Positions 1 through 24,772 are shown, numbered from the stretch's first letter. The stretch: 25,577 bases of DNA from Bugula neritina (GCA_964035545.1 CAXIUT010000065.1:1-25577); one strand, 5' to 3'. Notes: a model not told the origin generated them from the letters alone. Program-made: numbers and translations.

Positions 1-383
1 ATGCGGGGCAGGGCGGCTGACTGGCTGCATTGCTCCAGGAGCTTGTTGACGGTGCTGCGGGCGAGGGGGCTTCCACGCTCGGACACAAAGAGCCAGGGCA
101 GCTCACTCTCACGCTCTCGAAGGTAACGCCTGAGAAGCCTCAGTTCGTCACCAGCAATCGGGTGCATCCCGTCGATCCCGTTCTTGGATCGCTTCACGAA
201 TACCGTGGCCTGATCGAGGTTCAACCGCTCAAGCTTGATATGGCAGAGCTCCGACACGCGCAGGCCGTGGCGGTAGAGCATCAGAATGATCAGCTCGTTG
301 CGAGCTGGATTTCTGGTCTTTCGTGCTGTTTTACGTAGGGCCTCGACCTCACTGGCCGTGACCCAGTTTTTCACCTTGTTCAT
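1..383 (-). CDS. Tyrosine recombinase, 5' part (cut by window edge; full copy at 17653..18192)
   Basis: Same sequence as 17810..18192; MNKVKNW start. Confidence 0.85.
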   Translation of the reverse strand, partial: MNKVKNWVTASEVEALRKTARKTRNPARNELIILMLYRHGLRVSELCHIKLERLNLDQATVFVKRSKNGIDGMHPIAGDELRLLRRYLRERESELPWLFVSERGSPLARSTVNKLLEQCSQSAALPR

Positions 384-466
384 GAAACTTTCTACAAAAT
401 ATAAGCTGACGTCCTGTCTGAGCCTTCCTGAAAGCCTAACAAAATAGGGCAGGGGGGTTACAGAAC

Positions 467-494
467 ATTCAACATTATATACATAATGTAGAAT
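467..494. other. Symmetric dif-like tyrosine recombinase core site (11-6-11)
   Basis: ATTCAACATTA-TATACA-TAATGTAGAAT; inverted arms with 1 mismatch, extendable to 464..497. The minus strand reads TGTATA TAATGTTGAAT versus E. coli dif TGTATA TTATGTTAAAT. Lies directly upstream of the recombinase gene. Confidence 0.7.
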
Positions 495-520
495 GTTTAA
501 AGCTCTGGCGAGAGAAAATT

Positions 521-548
521 TTGACATCCAAATAAGTATGTATATAAT
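521..548 (+). promoter_or_regulatory. Sigma70-type promoter of the TA-Fic operon
   Basis: TTGACA-N16-TATAAT, 24 nt upstream of ATG 573. Confidence 0.75.
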
Positions 549-572
549 AGTGGTGTAATTTAATATGGTGAT

Positions 573-842
573 ATGCAAACTATGGGAAATGTAAAGAGAA
601 CCTTCACCCTTCCTGATGAGGTGAGCCAGGAACTTGATGAAGTGATCCCAAATAGGGAGCGTTCAAAGTTTATCGCAATGACTTTGCAGGAGGCTTTGCG
701 TCAGAAAAAACGTGATGAGCTTATGAAGCTTCTAGATGATCTGCCGCGTGATAAATCTCTGGATGGGGTGCAGGCAGAGGATGTGCTGCGCGAAATCCGC
801 GATACCCGCGCCGATGAAATACTTTCTAACTCTCGCCCATGA
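573..842 (+). CDS. CopG/ribbon-helix-helix antitoxin (VapB-like)
   Basis: KRTFTLPDEVSQELD...RSKFIAMTLQEAL RHH pattern; ATGA overlap with the PIN gene. Confidence 0.85.
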   Translation: MQTMGNVKRTFTLPDEVSQELDEVIPNRERSKFIAMTLQEALRQKKRDELMKLLDDLPRDKSLDGVQAEDVLREIRDTRADEILSNSRP

Positions 843-1285
843 AGCATAAAATCATAGTACCCGATGCAAATGTCGCAGTAAAAATTCTCCACACTGAAGC
901 TGACACTGAACAAGCTCGTGCCCTGTTTCGTTCCTGCGCAGAGCACGGAACCAAGATTTTGGTCCCTGAGCATTTTCTCTATGAAGTGGTGAATGTATGC
1001 CAGCGTGTCAAAGTTGGGGTTGATGATGTTCTGGACTTCTACGAAGCATTGAGATCGTCAATTCTTACCGTGGTATCTCCGAACCGGGATATCTGGCAGA
1101 GAGCTGAACAGATTGCTCAAGATGGGCATCCAAACAGTGGCTTTCCATCGATCTATGACAGTATCTACCAAGCACTCGCGCTTGATGCTGGGGGCGTCTT
1201 TATAACTGCTGATAAACGCCACGTTGCAAAAACCCATCAACATGGTGGGGTGATGTTGCTCAGTGATTGGGCAGACGACAAATAA
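839..1285 (+). CDS. vapC: PIN-domain toxin (VapC family)
   Basis: IVPDANVAVK, YEVVNV, SIYDSIYQALA and FITADKR carry the acidic PIN motifs. Confidence 0.9.
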   Translation: MKHKIIVPDANVAVKILHTEADTEQARALFRSCAEHGTKILVPEHFLYEVVNVCQRVKVGVDDVLDFYEALRSSILTVVSPNRDIWQRAEQIAQDGHPNSGFPSIYDSIYQALALDAGGVFITADKRHVAKTHQHGGVMLLSDWADDK

Positions 1286-1297
1286 CCATGCGATACT

Positions 1298-2296
1298 ATG
1301 AAAAACGATAGAAAAATTACATCTTTGGATCTGACGGAACCGATGGTTCCAATAAGCCCGAAGCAAAAAGAGGAGCTTGTGCAGCTGCGCGAGCGTTTTA
1401 TTCAATTAGTTTCTAAAATTATGAACGCTGAAAGTTTTGATCTTACTCAGGTCTATCCAGATACCGAAGACCTTGGCGAATTGTATGACCAACTTGATGA
1501 CTTAAAAAAATGCCTGGACAGCTTCAGACCATTCAATCCTGCTCAAGTGAAAAACCTCCGTGAGGTATATGATACTGAATACACGTACGCGTCTAACAGG
1601 ATCGAGGGAAATACTCTTACGCTCCAGGAGACCAGTTTTGTTATCAATGAAGGTCTGACGATCAGCAACAAGCCGATGAAGGATCATATTGAGGCGATCA
1701 ATCATAAAGTAGCCATCGACTTCATGCGCGAGCTTGCTGACCAGAATGAACCTATTAGTGAGCGAAACATCAAGCTGATACACGCACTGATTTTGCAGGG
1801 TATAGACCGTCAAGAGGCTGGAAAATATCGCGATGTGGTAGTTGGGATACGTGCTACTGATATCGTCTTCCCAGAACCCTTCATGGTTCCTGATCTTATG
1901 CGTGATCTCATAGACTTCTATGAAGAGCATAAGGACGAGTTTCACCCAGTGAAACTTGCGGCGCAGATGCACGCTAGGCTGGTGAATATCCATCCGTTCA
2001 TTGATGGAAATGGACGCACTTGCCGCTTGGTAATGAATCTAATTTTGTTGCAAAACGGTTATCCACTCACAATTTTTGCACCTGACGCGGATGCAAGACA
2101 GACATATTTTGATGCGCTCAACCAGACACGCGACACTGAAGATCAATCACACTTCGAGCTCTTCGCGGCAAAAAATGTCAAACGATGGGCGATGGAATAC
2201 CTCTCGATGCTTGCCCCGAATATCGGGGAAAACGAACAAAAAAAAGGCTACTACTACTTCAAGAAAGTCGAGCCATATCTACGGCATACAAAATAA
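1298..2296 (+). CDS. Fic family protein (class II, intramolecular inhibitory helix)
   Basis: Catalytic motif HPFIDGNGRTCR; inhibitory motif SNRIEGN N-terminal to it. Confidence 0.95.
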   Translation: MKNDRKITSLDLTEPMVPISPKQKEELVQLRERFIQLVSKIMNAESFDLTQVYPDTEDLGELYDQLDDLKKCLDSFRPFNPAQVKNLREVYDTEYTYASNRIEGNTLTLQETSFVINEGLTISNKPMKDHIEAINHKVAIDFMRELADQNEPISERNIKLIHALILQGIDRQEAGKYRDVVVGIRATDIVFPEPFMVPDLMRDLIDFYEEHKDEFHPVKLAAQMHARLVNIHPFIDGNGRTCRLVMNLILLQNGYPLTIFAPDADARQTYFDALNQTRDTEDQSHFELFAAKNVKRWAMEYLSMLAPNIGENEQKKGYYYFKKVEPYLRHTK

Positions 2297-2302
2297 CCAA
2301 AC

Positions 2303-2330
2303 TTTCAACATTATATTTATTTTGTGGAAA
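2303..2330. other. Second, hybrid/degenerate dif-like site
   Basis: TTTCAACATTA-TATTTA-TTTTGTGGAAA; left arm plus TA matches 468..479 (ttcaacattata); 6 nt after the Fic stop. Confidence 0.5.
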
Positions 2331-2404
2331 AGGCAAAAGAAATGGGTGTCTCAAGAGGAACCGTCTACAAAGCAACTGCCCAATTTATAATCTCCGGCCT
2401 TTAA
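2324..2404 (+). pseudogene. C-terminal HTH remnant of a serine resolvase/invertase
   Basis: Translates VEKAKEMGVSRGTVYKATAQFIISGL*, a Hin/resolvase-type recognition helix with no catalytic N-terminus. Confidence 0.6.
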
Positions 2405-2452
2405 CCTGATTTGTTTGCGGGGATGATAACACCCCTCACGCCTGCCAAAATC

Positions 2453-3481
2453 TTACTTCAAAAACTCTGCCAATACGGCCGCTTCGTATGCCTTAACGCT
2501 CATCCGTGCTGACGGGCCATAGCTTTCGAAGCCCGTCTCCAACTGTGGGAACAGCTCAAGGATTTCGTTGCGCGTTGCTACATCCAGCGCGGACCAACCC
2601 ATTTCACCTGGGTGGAAGCTTTCTGTGGCAGACCCTTCGGCAAAGATGATCTCGTGTTGATCGAACAGGATGTGGAAATATTCCACTTCGCCGCCTTCGT
2701 CACGGGTAATCGTTTTGTCGTTGATCAGGGCCTTGGCAGGGGCCAAAACTTCGGCCTCGCCAAAGAGCAGCTCTGCACGCCATCCTTCCAGAACCATACG
2801 GTGCTGAGGAGAGACGCGAAGATCACGGGTGTTGCCCAATGTGCCTGCGGCGATCTTGATTGGGGCCAGTTTGCCAAGGGCCGCGCGTTTGGTGGATCCG
2901 ATCCAGCGGATTGGCTGCATCCCATTGTCGCGGGTGCGCACCATCATGCCTTCGGCCAGATCCTGCACGGCAACTTCGCCTTGATTCGTGTCAATCATCG
3001 TGTCGCGGGCAAAGCAGACGGCGGTTAAAGACGCATTATCAAGTGTAAATACGTCAGCGCCATTAGTGGACCCAATTCTAATGCCTGTGATATCGGATGC
3101 TGCTGTGAAAGTGATCGTTGCCGTTTGGTAATCAAGACCAGCACTATAAACTGCATCAAAAGTTCCCAGCACATTGCCGTCTTGATCTTGCAAACTCAGT
3201 TGAGAATCGCTTCCTGAACTGCGGCTCCCGGCATCATAGTCAATTGTAAATGTATATTCGGTGCCTGTCGTCAGTGGGGTTGTTAAGGTCTGCTCCATCA
3301 TTTCCCCTATGACCATAACCCAGTCATCCCCGTCCGTGGCCCCACCTGGCGCACCCATGCTGGTTAGGCCTCGGTTCAAGTCAGCTGTTCCAACAGCATT
3401 TGTCCATTCAGGTGGAGCTGTGCTGTATACCACGCCTGTGTGTGGGCCTTCGAAGCTGCCATTTCTAAGTAGTTCAGTCAT
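2453..3481 (-). CDS. Hint-domain protein copy 1 (N-terminal carbohydrate-binding-like jelly roll + Hint_2/BIL domain)
   Basis: Hint starts at C156 (VCFARDTMIDT); LRVSPQHR block; YFHILFDQHEIIFAEG..TESFHPG; N-domain runs LLRNGSFE...LDNASL; RBS AAGGA. Confidence 0.92.
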   Translation of the reverse strand: MTELLRNGSFEGPHTGVVYSTAPPEWTNAVGTADLNRGLTSMGAPGGATDGDDWVMVIGEMMEQTLTTPLTTGTEYTFTIDYDAGSRSSGSDSQLSLQDQDGNVLGTFDAVYSAGLDYQTATITFTAASDITGIRIGSTNGADVFTLDNASLTAVCFARDTMIDTNQGEVAVQDLAEGMMVRTRDNGMQPIRWIGSTKRAALGKLAPIKIAAGTLGNTRDLRVSPQHRMVLEGWRAELLFGEAEVLAPAKALINDKTITRDEGGEVEYFHILFDQHEIIFAEGSATESFHPGEMGWSALDVATRNEILELFPQLETGFESYGPSARMSVKAYEAAVLAEFLK

Positions 3482-3733
3482 TTGTTGTATCCTTCTTTCA
3501 CCTTAAACAGGCTTCAACATGATGTGTCAGATTTAGATCATTCACTTTAGTGATCGTGTGCTTCTCTTTCCTCGAAACGGATCATTAATTAATCTTTAGT
3601 TTTTAATTTGGGCAGATTTGTAATCGAATTTGGGCGTGCTTGTGGTCAAATTTGGACCAGTGAGGCCAATGGGCAGATATTAGGTGGCTCAAGCTTAGAG
3701 CGTTTCAACCGTAACCGCCTAAGGTTGGATACC

Positions 3734-3763
3734 AAAAAAGGGCGGCCCTTGGGCCGCCCTTTT
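3734..3763. terminator. Bidirectional intrinsic terminator downstream of Hint copy 2
   Basis: aaaaaaGGGCGGCCcttgGGCCGCCCtttt; gives a U6 tract on the minus strand. Confidence 0.85.
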
Positions 3764-3807
3764 GAAACTACGAAACGTTTCGCTTTTAATCTGATTTGTT
3801 GTGGAGA

Positions 3808-3842
3808 TTGGAGTGTAGCCAATTCAATTGACTACACCCCAA
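3808..3842 (-). other. Long palindromic hairpin (REP-like) in the 3' UTR of Hint copy 2
   Basis: ttggagtgtagccaatt-c-aattgactacaccccaa; both mismatches become G.U pairs on the minus strand. Confidence 0.65.
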
Positions 3843-3872
3843 GACGCAATAAACCCCACTGCTACCAAGATC

Positions 3873-4901
3873 TTACTTCAAAAACTCTGCCAACACGGCC
3901 GCTTCGTATGCCTTAACGCTCATCCGCGCGGACTGACCATAGCTTTCGAAGTCCGTCTCCAACTGTGGGAACAGTTCAAGGATTTCGTTGCGCGTTGCGG
4001 CATCCAGTGCGGACCAGCCCATTTCACCTGGGTGAAAGCTTTCTGTGGCAGACCCTTCGGCAAAGATGATCTCGTGTTGATCGAACAGGATGTGGAAATA
4101 TTCCACCTGACCGCCTTCGTCACGGGTAATCGTTTTGTCGTTGATCAGGGCCTTGGCAGGGGCCAAAACTTCGGCCTCGCCAAAGAGCAGCTCTGCACGC
4201 CATCCTTCCAGAACCATACGGTGCTGAGGAGAGACGCGAAGATCACGGGTGTTGCCCAATGTGCCTGCGGCGATCTTGATTGGGGCCAGTTTGCCAAGGG
4301 CCGCGCGTTTGGTGGATCCGATCCAGCGGATTGGCTGCATCCCATTGTCGCGGGTGCGCACCATCATGCCTTCGGCCAGATCCTGCACGGCAACTTCGCC
4401 TTGATTCGTGTCAATCATCGTGTCGCGGGCAAAGCAGACGGCGGTTAAAGACGCATTATCAAGTGTAAATACGTCAGCGCCATTAGTGGACCCAATTCTA
4501 ATGCCTGTGATATCGGATGCTGCTGTGAAAGTGATCGTTGCCGTTTGGTAATCAAGACCAGCACTATAAACTGCATCAAAAGTTCCCAGCACATTGCCGT
4601 CTTGATCTTGCAAACTCAGTTGAGAATCGCTTCCTGAACTGCGGCTCCCGGCATCATAGTCAATTGTAAATGTATATTCGGTGCCTGTCGTCAGTGGGGT
4701 TGTTAAGGTCTGCTCCATCATTTCCCCTATGACCATAACCCAGTCATCCCCGTCCGTGGCCCCACCTGGCGCACCCATGCTGGTTAGGCCTCGGTTCAAG
4801 TCAGCTGTTCCAACAGCATTTGTCCATTCAGGTGGAGCTGTGCTGTATACCACGCCTGTGTGTGGGCCTTCGAAGCTGCCATTTCTAAGTAGTTCAGTCA
4901 T
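3873..4901 (-). CDS. Hint-domain protein copy 2
   Basis: 342 aa; differs from copy 1 at 4 C-terminal residues. Confidence 0.92.
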   Translation of the reverse strand: MTELLRNGSFEGPHTGVVYSTAPPEWTNAVGTADLNRGLTSMGAPGGATDGDDWVMVIGEMMEQTLTTPLTTGTEYTFTIDYDAGSRSSGSDSQLSLQDQDGNVLGTFDAVYSAGLDYQTATITFTAASDITGIRIGSTNGADVFTLDNASLTAVCFARDTMIDTNQGEVAVQDLAEGMMVRTRDNGMQPIRWIGSTKRAALGKLAPIKIAAGTLGNTRDLRVSPQHRMVLEGWRAELLFGEAEVLAPAKALINDKTITRDEGGQVEYFHILFDQHEIIFAEGSATESFHPGEMGWSALDAATRNEILELFPQLETDFESYGQSARMSVKAYEAAVLAEFLK

Positions 4902-5153
4902 TTGTTGTATCCTTCTTTCACCTTAAACAGGCTTCAACATGATGTGTCAGATTTAGATCATTCACTTTAGTGATCGTGTGCTTCTCTTTCCTCGAAACGG
5001 ATCATTAATTAATCTTTAGTTTTTAATTTGGGCAGATTTGTAATCGAATTTGGGCGTGCTTGTGGTCAAATTTGGACCAGTGAGGCCAATGGGCAGATAT
5101 TAGGTGGCTCAAGCTTAGAGCGTTTCAACCGTAACCGCCTAAGGTTGGATACC

Positions 5154-5183
5154 AAAAAAGGGCGGCCCTTGGGCCGCCCTTTT
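5154..5183. terminator. Bidirectional intrinsic terminator downstream of Hint copy 3
   Basis: Identical to 3734..3763. Confidence 0.85.
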
Positions 5184-5227
5184 GAAACTACGAAACGTTT
5201 CGCTTTTAATCTGATTTGTTGTGGAGA

Positions 5228-5262
5228 TTGGAGTGTAGCCAATTCAATTGACTACACCCCAA
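5228..5262 (-). other. Palindromic hairpin in the 3' UTR of Hint copy 3
   Basis: Identical to 3808..3842. Confidence 0.65.
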
Positions 5263-5292
5263 GACGCAATAAACCCCACTGCTACCAAGATC

Positions 5293-6321
5293 TTACGACA
5301 AAAACTCTGCCAATACGGCAGCTTCTTGTCCCTTAACGCTCATCCGTGCTGCCAGGCCATAGCTGTCGAAATCAGTTTCCAGCTCTGGGAACAGCTCAAG
5401 GATTTCGTTGCGCGTTGCGGCATCCAGTGCGGACCAGCCCATTTCACCTGGGTGAAAGCTTTCTGTGGCAGACCCTTCGGCAAAGATGATCTCGTGTTGA
5501 TCGAACAGGATGTGGAAATATTCCACTTCGCCGCCTTCGTCACGGGTAATCGTTTTGTCGTTGATCAGGGCCTTGGCAGGGGCCAAAACTTCGGCCTCGC
5601 CAAAGAGCAGCTCTGCACGCCATCCTTCCAGAACCATACGGTGCTGAGGAGAGACGCGAAGATCACGGGTGTTGCCCAATGTGCCTGCGGCGATCTTGAT
5701 TGGGGCCAGTTGGCCTCGGGCCGCGCGTTTGGTGGATCCGATCCAGCGGATTGGCTGCATCCCATTGTCGCGGGTGCGCACCATCATGCCTTCGGCCAGA
5801 TCCTGCACGGCAACTTCGCCTTGATTCGTGTCAATCATCGTGTCGCGGGCAAAGCAGACGGCGGTTAAAGACGCATTATCAAGTGTAAATACGTCAGCGC
5901 CATTAGTGGACCCAATTCTAATGCCTGTGATATCGGATGCTGCTGTGAAAGTGATCGTTGCCGTTTGGTAATCAAGACCAGCACTATAAACTGCATTAAA
6001 AGTTCCCAGCACATTGCCGTCTTGATCTTGCAAACTCAGTTCAGAATCGGCTGGTGTACTGCGGCTCCCGGAATCATAGTCAATTGTAAATGTATATTCG
6101 GTGCCTGTCGTCAGTGGGGTTGATAAAGTTTGCTCTATCATTTCCCCTGCGATCCAAATCCAGTCATCCCCGTCCGTGGCCCCACCTGGCGTGCCCATGC
6201 TGGGTACGCCTCGGTTCAAGTCAGCTGTTCCAACAGCATTTGTCCATTCAGGTGGAGCTGTGCTGTATTCCACGCCTGTGTGTGGGCCTTCGAAGCTGCC
6301 ATTTCTAAGTAGTTCAGTCAT
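5293..6321 (-). CDS. Hint-domain protein copy 3 (divergent N-domain)
   Basis: 342 aa; 16 substitutions in residues 18-109 versus copies 1/2. Confidence 0.92.
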   Translation of the reverse strand: MTELLRNGSFEGPHTGVEYSTAPPEWTNAVGTADLNRGVPSMGTPGGATDGDDWIWIAGEMIEQTLSTPLTTGTEYTFTIDYDSGSRSTPADSELSLQDQDGNVLGTFNAVYSAGLDYQTATITFTAASDITGIRIGSTNGADVFTLDNASLTAVCFARDTMIDTNQGEVAVQDLAEGMMVRTRDNGMQPIRWIGSTKRAARGQLAPIKIAAGTLGNTRDLRVSPQHRMVLEGWRAELLFGEAEVLAPAKALINDKTITRDEGGEVEYFHILFDQHEIIFAEGSATESFHPGEMGWSALDAATRNEILELFPELETDFDSYGLAARMSVKGQEAAVLAEFLS

Positions 6322-6392
6322 TTGTTGTATCCTTGTCTAATATAACACTATGGCGAGACCTTTATGCGCAAATATCCGTCTGCACAAGCCAG

Positions 6393-6413
6393 TCATATCG
6401 ATAATCGATATGA
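6393..6413. promoter_or_regulatory. Perfect palindromic operator candidate in the divergent promoter region
   Basis: TCATATCGAT-A-ATCGATATGA. Confidence 0.55.
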
Positions 6414-6434
6414 TGATTAATGGATATATTTACG

Positions 6435-6479
6435 AGATATGCTATTTACAGTTTTGCAAGATATGCCATTTTACAGTTT
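6435..6479 (+). repeat. Imperfect 20/21-bp direct repeat upstream of the NusA-NTD-like gene
   Basis: agatatgctatttacagttt (6435) and agatatgccattttacagttt (6459). Confidence 0.6.
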
Positions 6480-6506
6480 ATTATCCCTAAAAAGAAGGAA
6501 ATGTAG

Positions 6507-6923
6507 ATGGATATGCTAAAAAATACTGGCCCTATCGACCTGAACACGCGGGCCGATTTGCGTCCACACATCGAAAATTATGCATCAGACAATGATATGA
6601 CATTTGATGACGCATTAGATCGAATCAGCACCCTATATGTGCAGGCCGCCCATTCGGTTCATGGATCCCAATATGATTTTCGCGCCACATTGAATGACGT
6701 AGGGCAAATCAAGCTGTTGCAGGTGTTAACTGTCGTAAGCACCGTAACAGACGAGGATCGGCAAGTATCTCTGACCAATGCCCGAAAAACCTATCCAAAT
6801 ATTGAATTGGGCGGGTATATTTTGAACCAGATCACCCCTGTGGAACCTGAAGGCTTATTCGATACTCCTGCGACACAAACTATAACAGTTAAAGGCATGA
6901 CCTTAAAACCTGTTCGCGGCTAA
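6507..6923 (+). CDS. Stand-alone NusA N-terminal-domain-like protein
   Basis: QAAHSVHGSQYDFRATLNDVGQIKLLQVLTVVSTVTD..RQVSLTNARKTYPNIELGGYILNQITP aligns by eye with the alphaproteobacterial NusA-NTD pattern (KAARSRYG..NIRA.I...GEI.L.R.L.VVE.VED...QI.L..AR...P..LGDFI...LPP). No S1/KH domains; RBS AAGGA. Confidence 0.7.
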   Translation: MDMLKNTGPIDLNTRADLRPHIENYASDNDMTFDDALDRISTLYVQAAHSVHGSQYDFRATLNDVGQIKLLQVLTVVSTVTDEDRQVSLTNARKTYPNIELGGYILNQITPVEPEGLFDTPATQTITVKGMTLKPVRG

Positions 6924-6926
6924 GGC

Positions 6927-6958
6927 TACGTCTGCGACCCTTGCGGGCCGCAGACGTA
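6927..6958. terminator. Stem-loop directly after the NusA-NTD-like gene
   Basis: tacgtctgcg-acccttgcgggc-cgcagacgta; no strong U tract on the + strand. Confidence 0.5.
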
Positions 6959-6963
6959 AAGCC

Positions 6964-7128
6964 ATGCTTGGCTCATCGCCTCCAGCAGCCTGTTATTGTG
7001 CCGCACAGGATTATATCCCAATCGTGATCACGCGATCCGGGGACAAGACCTCTGCCGTGCTTATTTCACTGGCCGAATACGAATCATTGGTGAAAACACA
7101 GCATCTTTTAAAACATCGGGTTAAGTAG
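6964..7128 (+). pseudogene. Phd/YefM antitoxin remnant
   Basis: 7000..7113 translates AAQDYIPIVITRSGDKTSAVLISLAEYESLVKTQHLLK, the YefM core; the N-terminal strand/helix, the C-terminus and the toxin are missing. Confidence 0.65.
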
Positions 7129-7762
7129 AGGCGATGGAGGGGCCGGGATGGTCTATCCAGGCAACGGCAATGCTGTCATCTGCCGCGCGATGGGGAATGG
7201 CATAGCCTTGCGCTGTTTTCAGTGCTGGGTTTTGCCGCGCGGCGCGCAGTCCTTCTGTGAGCCCCCCCGATCTGATCAGCGCACGCTCTTCGGCATCCGC
7301 AGTGGATGTGAGCCAGGCATTGAGGTGGCGCAGCATATCCGCTTGGGTACTGACCCCAAGGGCTGCGAAAGCAATAGGCTCATCGACAAGGCGCAGCACT
7401 TCGCCAATTCGGGTTCTGTCCGTTGCCTCAACAATCTCTAGCTGCCCTTGTTCGGTAAAGGCGCACAGGATGACCGTCTGCTTCTTGGTGATTTGCGGCA
7501 AGAGTGTGGATAATTCTTCAACCGCCCGTGGCGGGGGGGATGCGTCTTTAAGCATGTCCATCGTGGTATGCGTGATCAACCATGCGTTGTCACCCAGCCG
7601 CATTCTGACCCATCCTGCCTCACGCAGATTATTCAGCGCGCGCCAAATACCCATACGGGACAGCTCGGGCAGAGCACTTTGCAAGTCTCTCAAAGCCACT
7701 GGAGCATTTTGCGCGACGGCGCGATAAACTGCCAAAGTGCGGGTGGTTGGGGTGCCGGCCAT
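7121..7762 (-). CDS. IclR-like winged-HTH transcriptional regulator
   Basis: RTLAVYRAVAQNAPVALRDLQSALPELSRMGIWRALNNLREAGWV is an IclR-type HTH; degenerate C-terminal effector domain; start site uncertain. Confidence 0.65.
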   Translation of the reverse strand: MAGTPTTRTLAVYRAVAQNAPVALRDLQSALPELSRMGIWRALNNLREAGWVRMRLGDNAWLITHTTMDMLKDASPPPRAVEELSTLLPQITKKQTVILCAFTEQGQLEIVEATDRTRIGEVLRLVDEPIAFAALGVSTQADMLRHLNAWLTSTADAEERALIRSGGLTEGLRAARQNPALKTAQGYAIPHRAADDSIAVAWIDHPGPSIAST

Positions 7763-8056
7763 ATTGGGAAACACTTTTTTTGGGGGTCGTTTGCACATTG
7801 TTGCACAAATCTGGGAGTACTAGAACCTGACGTCCGGAAAATTTGTCAGAGGGTTACATTTGCCTGTCGGGCACGCATGCAAATGCATCTCAGCTCCAGC
7901 CAGACCAGTCACGACCGCATTGCTTTAGTGTCGTGGTGTACGCTACCAAGGCCCACTCGTTAATTGTGCAAAAAAAACCGTTCATGCTCAGATCTAAGCA
8001 TATACATATTTGTTACAACTATACTACCCTCCCTATTTTCCGGTACTCCGTTAGAA

Positions 8057-8629
8057 ATGGACGAAACTTTCCTTCTCGCCATAAACGCCTCGATCTTGTG
8101 GGGCGTTTATGTTGGCCTGCTGACTTGGCTCTTGCGCTTCAAAACACTGGTGTTGGTCCTGCTGCTGGCTCCTTTAGTGATCGGGTCCACTTTCCGGCAC
8201 ATTGCCGGGATGCCAGAGTTGATCGGCTTCTACGGCACGTCGCTGCTTTATGGCGCTCCGGGTATCATCGCTGGTATGCTCTACGCGGATTATCAGCGGA
8301 CGAAGGCATATTTCGCCCGTATTTCAAAGACCTCATTCCTTGCCCGTGGCGGGATCGGGCTGTCATCGGTGTATCTGCTGGGGTATTTCGGACAGAAGAT
8401 CATTTTTGAGAACCCAATGGTCGAACTGGTTCTTGGTTACATCAAGGGTGGGGACCGTGCGAAAGAGATCGTCTCCCGGGTCGATTATGACGGGGCGCTC
8501 ACTGCTGGCGGGGTCATTGTGGCTTGTGCGGGGGTGCTCGCCTTCAATACTTACCGGGAACACCGCAGGGCAGGGCCGGAAAACGTCCCAGCCATCAAAG
8601 AAGAACAAGAAACAGGCATTTCCTCATGA
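8057..8629 (+). CDS. Polytopic membrane protein (about 5 TM), function unknown
   Basis: Several hydrophobic segments; probable start MDETFLL; ATGA overlap with the next gene. Confidence 0.75.
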   Translation: MDETFLLAINASILWGVYVGLLTWLLRFKTLVLVLLLAPLVIGSTFRHIAGMPELIGFYGTSLLYGAPGIIAGMLYADYQRTKAYFARISKTSFLARGGIGLSSVYLLGYFGQKIIFENPMVELVLGYIKGGDRAKEIVSRVDYDGALTAGGVIVACAGVLAFNTYREHRRAGPENVPAIKEEQETGISS

Positions 8630-9660
8630 AGAACCCCAAGCTCATTTTTGCCATTGTCCTTGGCGTGGTTTTCTGCTTCGCAGGCTATAACCTCTGGTCC
8701 TATTTCAAGGAACAACAGGCCATCCAGCTCGAAGAGGATCGTCTGGCCGAAGAGCGCCGGGTCCAGCGCGAACAGGAACGGCAAGCTCAGATCACAGCGG
8801 AAGAAGAAGAACGTCGCCAGCGTGAAGCTGAGGCTGAAGCGCGGCGTTTGGAAGAGGAACGCCTTGCTGAAGAACGGCGTCTGGCCCGGGAAGCTGAAGA
8901 AGAAGCCCGTCGCCAAGAGGCTGAACGCCTACGGGCAGAACAAGAAGCCGAACGGCTCGCAGAACGTATTTCCCGCGCTCGCACCGTTGAGCGGATCGAA
9001 GAGGTTCCCCAGGAACTGATAGACCAGATGAACGGTCTGTCCCGTCGCTACATTGCCGATCATCCCTACGAATTCCTGACCCAGACTTTCGATGGCAGAA
9101 CCTTTGGGCCTCGCACGAATTTCGAAAAGCTGATCCAAGGCGACACTGATGCCTTGATGCTGGTCTCCGCAATTTCAGGGAACACCAAGCACCTGGAAGC
9201 GCTGATCGGCATTGGTATGGATATAAACCGGGGGAATGAAGCAGGTTACACGCCACTCATGTTCGCTGCCGCATACAACACGCCAGAAGTCGTCAGTTTT
9301 CTGGTGGGGCAGGGGGCAGATATTTCAGCCAAGGCCTATGTCCAGGACCTGACCCCATTGCATGTAGCCGCGCTCTTCAACCCGAACCCCGATGTGATCA
9401 ACGCCCTGGTCGATGCTGGTGCTGATCTTGAGGCGGTCACAGAAACCCCCATGACACCCCTTCTACTGGCCTGCTCAGACAACCAAAATCTGGAAGTCGC
9501 TGAACGGCTCGCGGAGCTGGGGGCCGACATTGAAGCCTATTCCCCCGATGGCCTCACAACCAAGGGATTGTGTGAACAACGTATCCGTGGGGAAGGGGAT
9601 CGGTACATCAAGATCACCGATGAGGTGAATGAGCGTATTTTGAGCCGCCTCACGCCATAG
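8626..9660 (+). CDS. Membrane-anchored coiled-coil + ankyrin-repeat protein
   Basis: MKNPKLIFAIVLGVVFCFAGY anchor; E/R/A-rich helix; repeats GYTPLMFAA, LTPLHVAA, MTPLLLAC with ..GAD ends. Confidence 0.88.
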   Translation: MKNPKLIFAIVLGVVFCFAGYNLWSYFKEQQAIQLEEDRLAEERRVQREQERQAQITAEEEERRQREAEAEARRLEEERLAEERRLAREAEEEARRQEAERLRAEQEAERLAERISRARTVERIEEVPQELIDQMNGLSRRYIADHPYEFLTQTFDGRTFGPRTNFEKLIQGDTDALMLVSAISGNTKHLEALIGIGMDINRGNEAGYTPLMFAAAYNTPEVVSFLVGQGADISAKAYVQDLTPLHVAALFNPNPDVINALVDAGADLEAVTETPMTPLLLACSDNQNLEVAERLAELGADIEAYSPDGLTTKGLCEQRIRGEGDRYIKITDEVNERILSRLTP

Positions 9661-10758: not shown

Positions 10759-11310
10759 TCAGGTCTCGTTCGTTGCGAGATATCGATAGATGGTAGCCTT
10801 TGAGAGGCTGTAGTGAGCCATCAGGTCTTTGATCAGCGTTCCAGCTGCGCGCCTTTGGCGAAGCTCAGCGATCTGATCTTCTGAAAGCGCGGGCCGTTTG
10901 CCAAACTGAACGCCGCGATCCTTCGCCTTTTTGATCCCGTCCATTTGACGCTCGGCACGGATTTCGGTTTCGAACTGTCCGATGGCACCAAGCATGTTGA
11001 ACAGGAGCCGCCCGGTTGCGTCGGATGTGTCGATGTTCTGATCGAGGACGACCAGATCGACGCCTTTCTCGCGCAGGGTCTCGGCGATCTGACACAGGTG
11101 TAGCGTTGAGCGCGCCAATCGGTCGATGCGCGTGACGATGAGTTGATCTCCGCCGCGGATGTAATTCAGGCACTCTTTCAGCTGAGGGCGGGCATCGGTC
11201 GTGCCACTGCGCTTCTCTTCGAAGAGCTTGTCGCAGCTATCCAGCTTTTCGCGCTGCACGTCCAGAGATTGTCCAACAGAACTGACGCGGGCGTATCCGA
11301 CTTTGGCCAT
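10759..11310 (-). CDS. tnpR: Serine resolvase
   Basis: GYARVSS, RPQL, TRIDRLARS, C-terminal HTH SKATIYRYL. Confidence 0.95.
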   Translation of the reverse strand: MAKVGYARVSSVGQSLDVQREKLDSCDKLFEEKRSGTTDARPQLKECLNYIRGGDQLIVTRIDRLARSTLHLCQIAETLREKGVDLVVLDQNIDTSDATGRLLFNMLGAIGQFETEIRAERQMDGIKKAKDRGVQFGKRPALSEDQIAELRQRRAAGTLIKDLMAHYSLSKATIYRYLATNET

Positions 11311-11434
11311 GGGTTCTCATTTAGGTTTTGGATTTGTGCGACATCCATATTGAGACATTGAAAAAGACATGGCAAGCGGATGGTCTCAGTTTCTACAGTT
11401 TTAAAGACCCTCCTCTGACAGAAAGACGATCCCC
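11311..11434. promoter_or_regulatory. Probable res site / divergent promoters
   Basis: Lies between divergent tnpR and tnpA; tctca/tgaga half-site-like motifs; subsites not resolved. Confidence 0.5.
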
Positions 11435-14335
11435 ATGGCACACCGAGCGGTCCTGACCGCGCGACAACGCGCGGCCCTTTTCGACCTTCCGACGGATGAG
11501 GCGTTGCTGCTTCGGCACTACACCCTATCCGATGAAGACATCAATTTTATCCGTACTCGTCGTCGCCCCGAGAACCAGATTGGCATCGCGCTGCAGCTTT
11601 GTGCCCTTCGATATCCGGGGCGGCTGTTGAGGCCCGGAGAAATCATCCCCAAAGAAATGTCTGACTACATCGCTGCCCAACTTGGGGTCAAACCCGACGA
11701 CCTTCTGCCCTATGCCGAACGAGAGAACACGCGCCATGAACATCTGGAAACACTGCGCAAGATTTACGGATACGAGATGTTCAAGGGAAAGCGGATCAAG
11801 CAGATGCGTACCTGGTTGGATCAGAATGCTGAAGGTGCGCAATCAAGCGAAGGCCTGGTCCGCGCTTTTGTGGAAGAATGCCGTCGGCGACAGATCATTC
11901 TGCCGGGCATAACGGTCATAGAACGGCATTGCGCCGACGCACTCGTTGCTGCTGAGCGCCGGATCGAAACCCGTATTGCCGCGCGGCTCGACAGCCCGAT
12001 GCGTACCCGCCTCGACGAATTATTGAACGAAGAAACGGACCACCGAACCACCAGGTTCGTCTGGTTACGTCAGTTTGAGCCAGGCAAGAACTCCGCAGAC
12101 ATCAACCGTCTGCTGGATCGATTGGAATTTCTGAAGGCGGTTTCCCTGGTTCCGACAATCCTCGATGACATCCCTGCGCATCGGATCACGCGGCTGCGCC
12201 GACAGGGGGAGCGCTACTTTGCGAAAGGACTGCGCGACATCACCAGTGACCGCCGCCTTGCCATTCTGGCCGTGTGTGTCGTGGAATGGACTGCGGCCAT
12301 CGCGGATACCGTTGTGGAGACACATGACAGGATCGTGGGTAGCATCTGGCGGGATGCAAAACGGATTTGCGAGACAAGTGTAGCCGAAGCCCAAGCGGCA
12401 ATCGCAGAGACCCTGGCCGGGTTCGAGGCCCTGGGGTCAAGCCTGTTGATGGCCAGGGGGGATGATGCCGCCCTCGCCGGTGCAGTTGACACTTCTTGTG
12501 GCTGGACAAGCCTTGAAAGCCTGGTCGCGCAAGCAACGCAGCTTCAGACAACGGTAAAAGCAGATGTGCTGGCCCATGTGTCCAAGGGTTTCCACCGGTT
12601 CAAACGCTACGCGCGGCGTATGCTGGCGGCTTTGGATATGACATGTGCCAGTGTGGCTCAGCCTTTGGTCACGGCAGCGCACATCATCCGTGACAAACAG
12701 GATATCCCCGTCACTTCGCTGTCTTTCTTGCTGCCACGTTCGAAATGGCGGCCCCAATTCCGCGCGCCTGATGTCGATCAAGAGCGGCTGTGGGTTGTCG
12801 CCGTCCTGTGCCACCTGCGCGATGCGTTCCGTTCTGGCGATATCTGGCTTCCGCATTCGCGGCGTCATGCCGATATGAAGCAAACCCTTGTCTCCATTGA
12901 TGCCGCCCGCACCATGGGGCTTTCAATGCCACTGGAACCAGAGATCTGGATCGCGGATCGAAAGCGCCGCTTGGAAGATGGATTGAAACGGTTGGTCAAG
13001 GCCGTGCGCTCCAAAACCCTGCCGAGCGGGGTCATTGAAGACGGCGTATTGCGCGCCGAACGTCTTGAGGCCGATGTGCCAGAAGAGGCCAGTGATCTCG
13101 TCCTCGATCTTTACCGCCGTCTGCCCGAGGCGCGGATCACCGATATCCTCACAGAGGTCGACAACGATACCTGCTTTACCGAGGCCTTCACGCATCTGCG
13201 CACCGGTGCCCCGTGTCGCGACAAGATCGGCCTGCTCAACGTTATCTTGGCTGAGGGCCTCAATCTGGGCCTGAGCAAAATGGCAAATGCCACCAGCACC
13301 CATGACTTTATCCAACTCTCCCGCTTGTCGCGCTGGCATGTCGAAAGTGAGGCCATGGCCCGCGCCCTGGCCACGGTGATCGACGCGCAAGCCCGATTGC
13401 CGATGGCCCAGTTCTGGGGGGCAGGCACAACTGCTTCAAGCGATGGTCAGTTCTTCCCGACCACGCGCCAGGGCGAAGCGATGAACCTCATCAACGCGAA
13501 ATATGGCAACGAGCCCGGCATCAAAGCCTACACCCACGTCTCCGACCAATATGCACCTTTCGCCACGCAGGTCATTCCAGCCACGGTGAGCGAAGCGCCG
13601 TACATACTGGATGGTTTGCTGATGAACGAGGCAGGGAAGCAGGTCAAAGAGCAATATGCCGACACCGGAGGCTTCACTGATCTCGTCTTCGCCGCCACGT
13701 CCCTGCTCGGGTATCGTTTCCATCCCCGCATTCGCGACCTGGCCTCCAAGCGGTTGCATGTGTTTGACCTCCGCGCTGTTCCCAAAGAGCTGAAAGGGTT
13801 GACCGGGGACAAGATCCGGGAAGCGAAGATCGTTGAAAACTGGCCGGACGTTTTGCGCTGCATCGCTACAATGCTGTCAGGCCGAATGCAGCCAAGTCAC
13901 CTCCTCAAGAAATTGGCCGCGCGCCCGAGGCAACATGATCTGGCGTTGACCCTGCGGGAGATCGGCCGGGTCGAACGCACATTGTTCATCATCGAATGGC
14001 TGCTCGACACCGACATGCAGCGCCGCGTCAATATCGGCTTGAACAAGGGAGAAGCACATCACGCCCTGAAAGGTGCCCTCCGGATCGGGCGTCAGGGAGA
14101 AATCCGTGACCGTACCACCGAAGGTCAACACTTCCGCATCGCTGGCCTCAATCTGCTGACCGCCATCATCATTTACTGGAATTCCAAACAGCTCGGCAAC
14201 GCCGTGACAAAGCGACAGCGGGCAGGACTGGACTGCCCACCCGAACTCCTCGCCCACATCTCACCGCTTGGATGGGCACACATCATTCTAACGGGTGAAT
14301 ACCGCTGGCCGAAAATCCCGGTTCAAAATCCTTAA
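11435..14335 (+). CDS. tnpA: Tn3-family transposase
   Basis: 966 aa; SSDGQ, DTGG, LNKGE (DDE) and HISPLGWAHI; stop codon inside the right IR. Confidence 0.97.
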   Translation: MAHRAVLTARQRAALFDLPTDEALLLRHYTLSDEDINFIRTRRRPENQIGIALQLCALRYPGRLLRPGEIIPKEMSDYIAAQLGVKPDDLLPYAERENTRHEHLETLRKIYGYEMFKGKRIKQMRTWLDQNAEGAQSSEGLVRAFVEECRRRQIILPGITVIERHCADALVAAERRIETRIAARLDSPMRTRLDELLNEETDHRTTRFVWLRQFEPGKNSADINRLLDRLEFLKAVSLVPTILDDIPAHRITRLRRQGERYFAKGLRDITSDRRLAILAVCVVEWTAAIADTVVETHDRIVGSIWRDAKRICETSVAEAQAAIAETLAGFEALGSSLLMARGDDAALAGAVDTSCGWTSLESLVAQATQLQTTVKADVLAHVSKGFHRFKRYARRMLAALDMTCASVAQPLVTAAHIIRDKQDIPVTSLSFLLPRSKWRPQFRAPDVDQERLWVVAVLCHLRDAFRSGDIWLPHSRRHADMKQTLVSIDAARTMGLSMPLEPEIWIADRKRRLEDGLKRLVKAVRSKTLPSGVIEDGVLRAERLEADVPEEASDLVLDLYRRLPEARITDILTEVDNDTCFTEAFTHLRTGAPCRDKIGLLNVILAEGLNLGLSKMANATSTHDFIQLSRLSRWHVESEAMARALATVIDAQARLPMAQFWGAGTTASSDGQFFPTTRQGEAMNLINAKYGNEPGIKAYTHVSDQYAPFATQVIPATVSEAPYILDGLLMNEAGKQVKEQYADTGGFTDLVFAATSLLGYRFHPRIRDLASKRLHVFDLRAVPKELKGLTGDKIREAKIVENWPDVLRCIATMLSGRMQPSHLLKKLAARPRQHDLALTLREIGRVERTLFIIEWLLDTDMQRRVNIGLNKGEAHHALKGALRIGRQGEIRDRTTEGQHFRIAGLNLLTAIIIYWNSKQLGNAVTKRQRAGLDCPPELLAHISPLGWAHIILTGEYRWPKIPVQNP

Positions 14336-15407: not shown

Positions 15408-16591
15408 CTAGGTCTGAGCCTTCAGAAATTCCCTGCGAGCCTTCTCGTAGTCCCTGAGATTTTTGAAGTCGCTCTTCCTCGGTTCAAGCAGAGGGTATCC
15501 GGCCTCCCCTTCCACAGCGCCTTCTAGGCGTTTGGAATGAGCATTGCTCTTCACCTGTTCATGGGTGAAGGCGCGGCTTGGGTAGATGATGAATTTAGCA
15601 TCAACAACCTGGCGTCGGCGGGTTTCGGGATTGACCGCATGTTCCTTCAGGACCTTCACCTCGGAAACAATATCCAAAGCCTCAAGCGTGTTTTGTACGT
15701 ATCTCACATTGTCCATTACGCGCGTGTACGGACTGATGCCTGAGTGGTTGATCACGGTCGAAAGCTTGATGTTGTAGGACTTGAACGGATCGGCCTGCGT
15801 GAAACGCAGACTGAGGGTTTTACGGAACCAACGGCCAAGGAAGCTGTCGTCCTGGATTACATTATCATAGCCGATTTGACGCCAGTTTTTTGCAAGGATC
15901 GACTTGGCGACCAGTGAGTTGAGCTTGATGTAGACGGTGGCGTTTTTGCCAGTCTTACTCTTACTGTCCTTCTCGTTCATGTAGCCGAACTCAACAAAGG
16001 GGGAGAAGGTAATGCTTTCCTCTTTTGTTTCGCCCTTCAGCACGTAGCGGGTCTCTGAAAGCACCTGAAGTGCCTCTAGGACTTGAGTGTGATTGTAGGA
16101 TGGATGTTTGGTACCGTGGCGCTTCTTCAGCTCTTGCTGGATTTCATAAACGGTTGTGAAAACAACGTAGTTATCAGTCTTTGCTGATGGTTCATCCTCT
16201 CCATCGAAGAAAAATCCACGCTCGATGGAAAGCTTAAAAATGATGAACTCGATGATCTCCTCGCGCACCCCTGGAAAGACAGATTTGTAGCCTTCTTTCT
16301 GCTCAAGGCTGGCTGGCTTGATGGTGAGATTGTACCCTTTCCCGCGATGAACATAAAACTTCTCAACCGGCAGAGCTGTTCCATCTTCGTTACGTTTCAC
16401 CTCCCCTATCGTTCCGTCTGGACGGATATACTTGGCACGATCACCGCCCGCCACAAAACGCGGGATAGCTTCATAGAACTCAAAGGCGTTCGTGTAAGGA
16501 ACGTCTGTGAGGCGAAGAGCTCCAGCTGGATCGGTTGTTTTCCCAAGTCCTTCATCCTGATGTTTATGATAGGGTTCTTTGGTCTAGCCAT
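15408..16591 (-). CDS. Plasmid replication initiator Rep, split by a one-base frameshift near 16510-16545
   Basis: Frame A MARPK...QLELF (ATG overlaps the stop of the upstream gene) and frame B TDVPYTNAFEFYEAIPRF...FPGVREEIIE join into about 394 aa with one extra base; next to iterons and the par genes. Confidence 0.7.
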
Positions 16592-17652: not shown

Positions 17653-18192
17653 CTACTCCCACATCCCCACAAACTGCTTCTCATTAAATCTGGCATAAAT
17701 CGCCGTGTTGCTAATCGAAACGTGACCCAGGTAGATTTGCACTGCACGGATATCATAGCCGTTGTTGATCATATAGAAGCCGCAGCCATGCCTCAGCATG
17801 TGCGGGTTGATGCGGGGCAGGGCGGCTGACTGGCTGCATTGCTCCAGGAGCTTGTTGACGGTGCTGCGGGCGAGGGGGCTTCCACGCTCGGACACAAAGA
17901 GCCAGGGCAGCTCACTCTCACGCTCTCGAAGGTAACGCCTGAGAAGCCTCAGTTCGTCACCAGCAATCGGGTGCATCCCGTCGATCCCGTTCTTGGATCG
18001 CTTCACGAATACCGTGGCCTGATCGAGGTTCAACCGCTCAAGCTTGATATGGCAGAGCTCCGACACGCGCAGGCCGTGGCGGTAGAGCATCAGAATGATC
18101 AGCTCGTTGCGAGCTGGATTTCTGGTCTTTCGTGCTGTTTTACGTAGGGCCTCGACCTCACTGGCCGTGACCCAGTTTTTCACCTTGTTCAT
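17653..18192 (-). CDS. FimB/FimE-like tyrosine recombinase (179 aa)
   Basis: HGLRVSE (R), RSKNG (K), HMLRH, YLGH, TAIYA (Y); probable start MNKVKNW. Confidence 0.92.
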   Translation of the reverse strand: MNKVKNWVTASEVEALRKTARKTRNPARNELIILMLYRHGLRVSELCHIKLERLNLDQATVFVKRSKNGIDGMHPIAGDELRLLRRYLRERESELPWLFVSERGSPLARSTVNKLLEQCSQSAALPRINPHMLRHGCGFYMINNGYDIRAVQIYLGHVSISNTAIYARFNEKQFVGMWE

Positions 18193-18275
18193 GAAACTTT
18201 CTACAAAATATAAGCTGACGTCCTGTCTGAGCCTTCCTGAAAGCCTAACAAAATAGGGCAGGGGGGTTACAGAAC

Positions 18276-18303
18276 ATTCAACATTATATACATAATGTAG
18301 AAT
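18276..18303. other. dif-like site (duplicate of 467..494)
   Basis: Repeat copy. Confidence 0.7.
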
Positions 18304-18329
18304 GTTTAAAGCTCTGGCGAGAGAAAATT

Positions 18330-18357
18330 TTGACATCCAAATAAGTATGTATATAAT
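18330..18357 (+). promoter_or_regulatory. Sigma70 promoter (duplicate)
   Basis: TTGACA-N16-TATAAT. Confidence 0.75.
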
Positions 18358-18381
18358 AGTGGTGTAATTTAATATGGTGAT

Positions 18382-18651
18382 ATGCAAACTATGGGAAATG
18401 TAAAGAGAACCTTCACCCTTCCTGATGAGGTGAGCCAGGAACTTGATGAAGTGATCCCAAATAGGGAGCGTTCAAAGTTTATCGCAATGACTTTGCAGGA
18501 GGCTTTGCGTCAGAAAAAACGTGATGAGCTTATGAAGCTTCTAGATGATCTGCCGCGTGATAAATCTCTGGATGGGGTGCAGGCAGAGGATGTGCTGCGC
18601 GAAATCCGCGATACCCGCGCCGATGAAATACTTTCTAACTCTCGCCCATGA
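18382..18651 (+). CDS. RHH antitoxin (duplicate)
   Basis: Identical to 573..842. Confidence 0.85.
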   Translation: MQTMGNVKRTFTLPDEVSQELDEVIPNRERSKFIAMTLQEALRQKKRDELMKLLDDLPRDKSLDGVQAEDVLREIRDTRADEILSNSRP

Positions 18652-19094
18652 AGCATAAAATCATAGTACCCGATGCAAATGTCGCAGTAAAAATTCTCCA
18701 CACTGAAGCTGACACTGAACAAGCTCGTGCCCTGTTTCGTTCCTGCGCAGAGCACGGAACCAAGATTTTGGTCCCTGAGCATTTTCTCTATGAAGTGGTG
18801 AATGTATGCCAGCGTGTCAAAGTTGGGGTTGATGATGTTCTGGACTTCTACGAAGCATTGAGATCGTCAATTCTTACCGTGGTATCTCCGAACCGGGATA
18901 TCTGGCAGAGAGCTGAACAGATTGCTCAAGATGGGCATCCAAACAGTGGCTTTCCATCGATCTATGACAGTATCTACCAAGCACTCGCGCTTGATGCTGG
19001 GGGCGTCTTTATAACTGCTGATAAACGCCACGTTGCAAAAACCCATCAACATGGTGGGGTGATGTTGCTCAGTGATTGGGCAGACGACAAATAA
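18648..19094 (+). CDS. vapC: PIN/VapC toxin (duplicate)
   Basis: Identical to 839..1285. Confidence 0.9.
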   Translation: MKHKIIVPDANVAVKILHTEADTEQARALFRSCAEHGTKILVPEHFLYEVVNVCQRVKVGVDDVLDFYEALRSSILTVVSPNRDIWQRAEQIAQDGHPNSGFPSIYDSIYQALALDAGGVFITADKRHVAKTHQHGGVMLLSDWADDK

Positions 19095-19106
19095 CCATGC
19101 GATACT

Positions 19107-20105: not shown

Positions 20106-20111
20106 CCAAAC

Positions 20112-20139
20112 TTTCAACATTATATTTATTTTGTGGAAA
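20112..20139. other. Hybrid dif-like site (duplicate of 2303..2330)
   Basis: Repeat copy. Confidence 0.5.
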
Positions 20140-24732: not shown

Positions 24733-24772
24733 GGCTACGTCTGCGACCCTTGCGGGCCGCAGACGTAAAGCC

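Follow-up and report, generated by a model that had tools for sequence, protein, structure and literature searches.

Tandem genes for type-B bacterial intein-like proteins, next to a stand-alone NusA N-terminal-domain-like gene, on an apparent plasmid in a bryozoan genome assembly

Three tandem Hint_2 genes

In a 25,577-nucleotide (nt) stretch of DNA from the assembly of the bryozoan Bugula neritina (GCA_964035545.1, CAXIUT010000065.1:1-25577; hereafter, the window), three intact paralogous open reading frames (ORFs) of 342 amino acids (aa) each lie in tandem on the minus strand, with a repeat unit of 1,420 bp (Table 1). An earlier note made from the sequence alone (the original prediction) had described this locus as three tandem Hint proteins, and all three ORFs indeed match the Pfam family Hint_2 (PF13403) over residues 155-292 (E values of 9e-52 to 3.6e-51, 174-176 bits versus a cut-off of 28.4), covering positions 1-146 of the 147 in the profile. 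Shine-Dalgarno sequences are present for all three ORFs. Scans for promoters and terminators gave background-level signals, save for a hairpin that is repeated in each of the two spacers. The control region ahead of copy 3 resembles the spacers only within the ~25 nt that precede the copy 3 start codon, and across its 185 nt copy 3 stands head-to-head with a gene for a protein that resembles the N-terminal domain (NTD) of NusA. We also considered a polymorphic toxin with a releasing HINT domain and rejected it, because the Hint domain is followed only by a conserved 50-aa tail and neither spacer has a called gene on the coding strand.

Architecture of the Hint proteins

The AlphaFold (AF2) model of copy 3, built from 34 relatives (mean pLDDT 76), consists of a beta-sandwich (residues ~17-153; hereafter, the N-domain), the Hint domain, and a helical tail of low confidence. 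The best structural match of the Hint part is the bacterial intein-like (BIL) domain 2lwy of Clostridium thermocellum (VIA Z 15.1, root mean square deviation of 2.2 over 117 residues), and the second-best is BIL2 of the Tetrahymena BUBL protein (6y75, Z 14.8); mini-inteins score Z 13-14.4, and the Hedgehog domain 1at0 scores Z 12.8. Residue 156 of the model aligns to residue 1 of several inteins, and the Hint fold ends at residues ~288-292. Both C156 and the motif S224-P-Q-H227 are invariant in 14 aligned relatives. The motif sits 68-71 residues past the first Cys, near H69 of BIL2, and is putatively assigned to intein block B, whose Thr/Ser-x-x-His motif assists the acyl shift, by its invariance and spacing; this spacing is also close to that in Hedgehog proteins. 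The Hint fold ends in an invariant E-S-F-H-P-G motif that has no His-Asn or Asn, and intein block G is thus absent. Because block G is missing, the domain is of type B, distinct from type A BILs and from inteins (as defined in PMC4031507). The 50-aa tail (residues 293-342) lies outside the Hint fold and is conserved across the family.

The original prediction placed a beta-sandwich of ~155 aa ahead of a Cys-initiated Hint domain, and both the alignment of residue 156 and the fold matches of the N-domain bear this out. In the Foldseek comparison with carbohydrate-binding module (CBM) and galactose-binding-like folds that it had proposed, the N-domain matches the HpiC1/Stig cyclases as well as CBM4, CBM16, CBM61, and porphyran-binding modules (E value of 1e-8, probability of 1.0). 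All of these share the same beta-sandwich fold (VIA Z 13.1-13.8 over 129-153 residues), with Z scores of 13.8 for HpiC1 (153 residues) and 13.7 for the CBM 8xmz (131 residues). Among the distant sequence relatives of the N-domain, one has two HpiC1-like domains and another is a DUF642/HpiC1-like protein with a PEP-CTERM anchor; there is also a weak resemblance to the choice-of-anchor C domain.

A rare N-domain in a large family with variable cargo

A word search recovered 1,922 relatives, and the named ones are mostly from marine Rhodobacterales (Planktomarina temperata, Thalassobium, Loktanella, and Marinovum), with one labelled Pirellulales. Homologs are found on 235 alpha-proteobacterial plasmids. 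The Hint-tail parts of the relatives are 55-69% identical, while their N-terminal parts are unrelated and comprise RTX repeats, FG-GAP repeats, others, or none. The genes in the window therefore belong to the known type-B BIL/Hint_2 family, which is large in marine Rhodobacterales, and within it their N-domain subfamily is rare: the best full-length relative has only 53% identity, and an exhaustive search with the N-domain alone returned 11 proteins (E value of ≤0.001) among 1.84 billion cluster representatives. A word search with the same domain returned nothing, which, given these 11 relatives, reflects the limit of shared 5-mers.

In Thalassobium sp. R2A62 (L015 183-4529), three tandem Hint_2 genes are located by Mob_Pre-like and integrase genes, and their Hint-tail modules are 93-96% identical while their N-domains are only 24-35% identical. 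We conclude from this array that a constant Hint module combined with a variable N-domain in tandem arrays is a trait of the family, of which the array in the window is a mild case. The Thalassobium array is the stronger example of the two and lies on a mobile element. Neither PADLOC nor PHROGs contains a family for the Hint protein or for its NusA-like neighbor, and these databases thus give no support for a known defense or phage role.

The neighboring NusA-NTD-like gene

The gene that faces copy 3 encodes a stand-alone protein of 138 aa that matches NusA_N and, in its AF2 model, folds like the isolated RNA-polymerase-binding NTD of NusA: the top 17 Foldseek matches are all NusA NTDs (TM-scores of 0.63-0.66 to 2kwp and 2mt4). 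Unlike NusA, it has no S1 and KH domains and is located by a Hint gene instead of in the nusA-infB operon. Its score against the profile for full NusA (TIGR01953) is 34 bits versus a cut-off of 253, with nothing beyond the NTD. The protein is rare. A profile built from it found 17 clusters among 5.8 billion proteins, and the ESM Atlas had no usable match. In a six-frame search of 401 Rhodobacterales genomes, which replaced an earlier pattern scan of species genomes that had given 3 loci, a stand-alone gene was present in 2 genomes, and the other 52 matches were the N-termini of genuine NusA proteins.

Every relative that has this type of N-domain and a readable gene context adjoins a NusA-NTD-like gene. 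In Planktomarina (two assemblies and one metagenome-assembled genome), the NusA-like gene, a GNAT acetyltransferase gene (Acetyltransf_3), and the Hint gene follow one another in this order and in the same direction, with the ends of the GNAT gene overlapping its neighbors (L007 7491-8000, L008 7456-8004, and L017 713-1222); the GNAT gene is absent from the window and from the other gene arrangements. In two metagenomic lineages, the NusA-like gene is immediately upstream of the Hint gene. In five more members that we checked (Ruegeria sp. HKCCD4884, Ruegeria sp. ANG-R, Sulfitobacter sp. F26204, one metagenome contig, and G327), the 3' end of a Hint_2 gene of 366-369 aa overlaps the start of the small gene by 4 nt. 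The partner is absent next to those Hint_2 proteins with other N-domains that were checked. The retention of this adjacency in four gene arrangements argues for a functional link between the Hint protein and the NusA-like protein. A tree of the Hint and tail modules does not settle if these partner-linked genes arose only once; its backbone is poorly supported, and one relative (P0122) sits on a very long branch. In the searchable library, we found no paper that pairs NusA with a Hint domain.

A small ORF that overlaps a Hint gene in Fuscovulum was examined as a further partner and rejected, since it is a fragment of a Hint domain and not NusA-like. Separately, a 194-aa protein on a 793-bp contig (P0147), annotated as a Hint_2 fragment, matches the partner profile (E value of 8e-6); it may represent a fusion of the two genes or an overlap that was mis-called. 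Just upstream of the NusA-like/GNAT/Hint cluster in one Planktomarina assembly lies an SU10-like podophage block with portal, major capsid, and M15 peptidase genes (L007 1-5521); in the second assembly (L008), the cluster is present but the phage block is not.

A gene-conversion mosaic

Copies 1 and 2 have the same sequence up to and including residue 263, and their repeat units are identical over 1,182 nt (positions 2691-3872), including the 391-nt spacer. The 3' ends of all three genes, in contrast, differ from one another at dS values of 0.19-0.38. The array is a gene-conversion mosaic, in which the 3' ends are old and the 5' parts have been homogenized. Within the 5' part, copy 3 differs from copies 1 and 2 mainly in residues 18-109 (the patch), where dS is 0.048. 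A codon comparison of this patch reproduces exactly the list in the original prediction, with 16 nonsynonymous codons (20 nucleotide steps; V18E, L39V, T40P, A44T, V55I, M56W, V57I, I58A, M62I, T67S, A84S, S89T, G90P, S91A, Q94E, and D109N) and 3 synonymous codons. Residues 110-201 are unchanged in copy 3, in agreement with that prediction, and the next differences are L202R and K204Q. The predicted clustering of the changes is also real: 12 pairs of changes fall within 3 nt of each other, when 3.2-5.1 are expected (P ≤ 0.0003), and the patch has 23 changes in 276 nt versus 3 in the 459 nt of the next segment, residues 110-262 (P = 7e-8). We considered a diversity-generating retroelement as the origin of these changes and rejected it, given that the ORFs of the replicon include no reverse transcriptase, that there is no adenine bias, and that the mutation spectrum covers all four bases.

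We polarized the changes with seven outgroups, whose residues match copy 3 17 times and copy 1 8 times. Trp56 is found in six of the six outgroups that align at its column and is lost in copies 1 and 2, which carry W56M and A58I on the same face of one beta-strand. Both the 17 to 8 matches and the conservation of Trp56 show that copy 3 is ancestral-like, and most of the polarizable changes took place on the lineage of copies 1 and 2.

Is the N-domain positively selected?

The original prediction regarded the N-domain as apparently positively selected. Over residues 18-109, dN/dS is 2.1 by the Nei-Gojobori method (NG86; 20 versus 3 steps), but this value does not differ significantly from 1 (Fisher's test, P = 0.16). 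Random placement of the 23 changes that takes the mutation spectrum into account gives 5.3 expected synonymous changes, when 3 are seen (probability of 3 or fewer, 0.18), and the entire homogenized 5' part (codons 1-262) has an omega of 1.76 (P = 0.20). Positive selection is therefore not upheld by dN/dS. It is possible, and the data are equally compatible with a conversion tract or with relaxed constraint. The location of the substitutions counts against the varying binding loops of the original prediction. As judged from the secondary-structure string of the AF2 model, three changes are in the 39-44 loop and about five are in or beside the 84-93 loop, but 6 of the 16 are in the beta-strands 53-58 and 61-70.

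The explanation put forward in the original prediction is that the beta-sandwich is under diversifying selection for ligand binding, and that the array encodes a small set of released binders that differ in their specificity and could be lectins, adhesins, phage decoys, or effectors. The ratio of 20:3 in the patch indeed cannot be reconciled with the purifying selection that acts on the tail (P = 0.001-0.04): it differs from the ratio in the tail (P = 0.039 and 0.0045), and both an omega of ≤0.5 (P = 0.009) and purifying selection as strong as that on the tail (P = 0.001) are rejected. If the whole 790 nt of the 5' part share one coalescence, dN of the patch (20/211) also exceeds dS of its flanks (1/126; P = 0.0005), although this contrast depends on a patch that was chosen after seeing the data. 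The swap between Trp and Met is on a beta-strand of a CBM-like fold, and in CBM folds aromatic residues often contact sugars. Across the family, N-domains diverge while Hint modules stay constant. The same patch, however, contains two dense runs of changes (6 in 12 nt and 5 in 9 nt), which may be single events and would then inflate dN/dS; the changed columns are no more variable among relatives than the other columns of the N-domain (P = 0.25); and only two N-domain variants are present in the array, which does not sustain the predicted family of diversified binders. Given also that dN/dS does not significantly exceed 1, we consider diversifying selection unlikely.

Three of the four synonymous changes of the 5' part fall within the patch, as is expected of a tract of different age or origin. 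This concentration, which counts against diversifying selection, would follow if the patch were a gene-conversion mosaic or a relic of relaxed constraint, in which residues 18-109 either escaped homogenization or were copied from a diverged chromosomal paralog, with copies 1 and 2 drifting after duplication. The sharp boundaries of the tract, its homogenized flanks, the loss in copies 1 and 2 of the Trp56 that is invariant in the outgroups, and the fact that neutrality is not rejected all agree with such a history. Yet the patch has a much lower dS than the unconverted 3' ends (0.2-0.4) and is hence not just a stretch of equal age that conversion left untouched. Nor do intact ORFs with Shine-Dalgarno sequences in all three copies, or the presence of the derived variant in two copies instead of one, speak for relaxed constraint, and there is no donor copy in the assembly, which has no bacterial chromosome. 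We regard this history as quite plausible, if somewhat short of an even chance.

The replicon and its setting

The window is one entire contig of the 216-Mb bryozoan assembly. In a comparison of the window with itself, positions 1-7768 are identical to positions 17810-25577 (7768 of 7768 nt, offset of 17,809). Because of this exact repeat, the window is most likely a circular replicon, or plasmid, of 17,809 bp that was read 1.44 times by the long-read assembler. An apparent second array at positions 20262-24130 is the same DNA as the first and not a biological second array. We searched the 216-Mb assembly and found no bacterial NusA and no further Hint_2 gene, and therefore the host bacterium of the plasmid, or its chromosome, is not in the assembly. 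The plasmid probably comes from a marine Roseobacter-type bacterium and was carried along with the bryozoan genome assembly.

The other genes, which include those for a ParA-like ATPase, a tyrosine recombinase, a Toprim-like ORF, a Tn3-family transposase with its resolvase, a PIN-domain protein, a Fic protein, and an ankyrin-repeat protein, fit a small plasmid. The Tn3 element is the sole part of the plasmid with close known DNA relatives. A small ORF and the PIN-domain gene form a VapBC-like pair with the Fic gene directly after it, and the Fic protein matches the SoFic defense family (PADLOC, E value of 2.4e-31) and PDC-S04 candidates. The ankyrin-repeat protein is worth noting in a bryozoan-associated bacterium, since proteins of this kind are typically found in bacteria interacting with eukaryotic hosts. 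Among the three ORFs with no assigned family, one of 225 aa weakly matches the C-terminal part of a CARF-family profile, and one of 348 aa, which adjoins ParA, may encode a replication initiator. An Rfam scan of the plasmid found no RNA family.

Table 1. Coordinates of the Hint array, its neighboring gene, and other features of the window
Feature	Positions	Strand	Remarks
Copy 1	2453-3481	-	342-aa paralog, last gene of the array; ORF, Hint_2 match
Copy 2	3873-4901	-	342-aa paralog with its own distinct 3' end; ORF, Hint_2 match
Copy 3	5293-6321	-	342-aa precursor, first gene of the array, N-domain ancestral-like; ORF, Hint_2 E value of 9e-52
Copy 3, N-domain	5857-6321	-	Codons 1-155
Copy 3, Hint_2	5446-5856	-	Codons 156-292
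Copy 3, tail	5293-5445	-	Codons 293-342 and stop
Copy 3, variable patch	5995-6270	-	Codons 18-109; 23 nt differences versus copies 1 and 2, homogenized sequence on either side
Spacer between copies 3 and 2	4902-5292	-	391 nt; terminator-like hairpin 5158-5170, then Shine-Dalgarno sequence ahead of the copy 2 start
Spacer between copies 2 and 1	3482-3872	-	391 nt; hairpin 3738-3750; 100% identical to spacer 4902-5292
Divergent control region	6322-6506		185 nt, from the copy 3 start to the NusA-NTD-like gene
NusA-NTD-like gene	6507-6923	+	138 aa, stand-alone; Pfam NusA_N E value of 2.8e-9, above cut-off
Small ORF	573-842		
PIN-domain protein	839-1285		
Fic protein	1298-2296		332 aa
Ankyrin-repeat protein	8524-9660		378 aa, Glu/Arg-rich coiled-coil stretch and ankyrin repeats; Pfam E value of 1e-18
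Tn3-family transposase and resolvase	10759-14335		Transposase of 966 aa; DNA 87% identical to copies on several Sulfitobacter sp. OXR-159 plasmids
Three ORFs	7121-7798, 7964-8629, 15408-16454	-, +, -	221-348 aa, no Pfam or NCBIfam family
Second reading of 1-7768	17810-25577		Exact, by over-read of a circular contig; 0 mismatches

Discussion

Type-B BILs of Rhodobacter and other alpha-proteobacteria were described by Amitai et al. (2003) and Dassa et al. (2004), as far as these studies are presented in PMC4031507. The proteins on the plasmid resemble them in the Cys-initiated Hint fold with neither a C-terminal His-Asn nor a +1 nucleophile, in the C-terminal placement of this domain behind hypervariable N-terminal parts, in the multiple copies per genome, and in the alpha-proteobacterial host, and differ from them in the rare CBM/HpiC1-like N-domain, the location on a small plasmid, and the obligatory NusA-NTD-like neighbor. 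The rare N-domain subfamily and its obligatory stand-alone neighbor are what is new here, and we regard them as modestly novel.

We propose, with a probability of roughly 0.7, that the three genes are type-B BIL/Hint_2 paralogs of marine Rhodobacterales on a 17.8-kb plasmid, arranged in a gene-conversion array, that their CBM-like sandwich is cleaved from the Hint-tail module, and that the NusA-NTD-like partner works jointly with them. In type-B BILs, cleavage is uncoupled from splicing (PMC4031507, PMC5874633). By homology, the Val155-Cys156 bond would undergo an N-to-S acyl shift carried out by Cys156; by default, hydrolysis would then resolve the thioester and free the 155-aa beta-sandwich from the Hint-tail module. 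That the Hint protein and the NusA-NTD-like protein may work together is implied by their constant adjacency.

Two known systems offer comparisons for such a reaction. The Hedgehog autoprocessing domain likewise combines a Hint domain with a short C-terminal extension, which in our model is probably helical, and by analogy the N-terminal signaling or binding domain would be released through a thioester at the Cys. The plasmid proteins, however, are bacterial and have no signal peptide, and their tail has no sequence similarity to that of Hedgehog; Hedgehog forms a lipid (sterol) adduct, whereas for the plasmid proteins no adduct of any kind is indicated by the genes alone. In BUBL BIL2, the thioester serves to join the N-terminal flank to a lysine on a different protein (PMC8616854), so that ligation, and not release alone, has a precedent. 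The cargo of BUBL BIL2 differs in being ubiquitin-like, and its domain has a C-terminal Asn.

Several observations weigh against the reading proposed above. The N-domain scores 20.6-22.3 bits against the Pfam family of HpiC1-like domains (PF22825), under the cut-off of 27, although the relatives P0003 and P0037 do have a precomputed match to this family; the likeness is one of fold, which does not by itself imply carbohydrate binding. Residues 322-342 of the tail are modeled at pLDDT < 50, and the putative block-B role of S224 and H227 is based on invariance and spacing and not on a residue-level structural alignment. As the original prediction had stated, none of the three proteins has RTX repeats (PF00353) or a signal peptide, and we found no ABC transporter, membrane-fusion, or outer-membrane genes for secretion among the ORFs of the plasmid.

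These absences also bear on a different explanation, in which release is coupled to export: a chromosomal type I system would export the precursor, and the Hint domain would then cut the beta-sandwich free outside the cell. The Hint-tail module is at the position of the C-terminal signal of type I substrates, its tail is retained across the family outside the Hint fold, and in many members of the family the same Hint-tail module is preceded by RTX repeats, with their sources naming these proteins as type I secretion targets (P0026, P0044, P0066, and P0086). Moreover, the distant relatives of the N-domain are of extracellular types (the PEP-CTERM-anchored DUF642/HpiC1-like protein and, weakly, choice-of-anchor C), and a homolog on a Phaeobacter plasmid is near genes for a calcium-binding protein and an ABC transporter. 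However, with no RTX repeats in the three proteins and no secretion genes on the plasmid, with a tail whose sequence is strongly conserved, which is unusual for type I secretion signals, and with no obvious role for the partner in an export scheme, we find export-coupled release rather doubtful. Farther from the default of hydrolysis would be a dedicated two-component system, in which, by analogy with Hedgehog cholesteroylation or BUBL lysine conjugation, the Hint thioester would transfer the beta-sandwich onto a nucleophile and the tail or the NusA-like partner would be the adaptor or acceptor, possibly tied to RNA polymerase; we consider such a system very improbable. If true, it would be a new bacterial system of enzyme-free protein conjugation and would give the type-B BIL domains a function, none having been known since 2003.

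To our knowledge, no biological role of type-B BIL/Hint_2 proteins is known beyond autocleavage in vitro. These proteins are abundant in marine bacteria of the Roseobacter group, as seen from the relatives and plasmid homologs counted above, and in one comparative study PF13403 is among the functions enriched in fast-growing bloomers (PMC12487129). The claim of positive selection on the N-domain should not be carried forward as established. The two natural variants of the N-domain, with Trp56 and Met56, are nevertheless a ready-made comparison for ligand binding, and the strictly conserved, translationally coupled partner gene of one subfamily gives a concrete experimental handle on the family.

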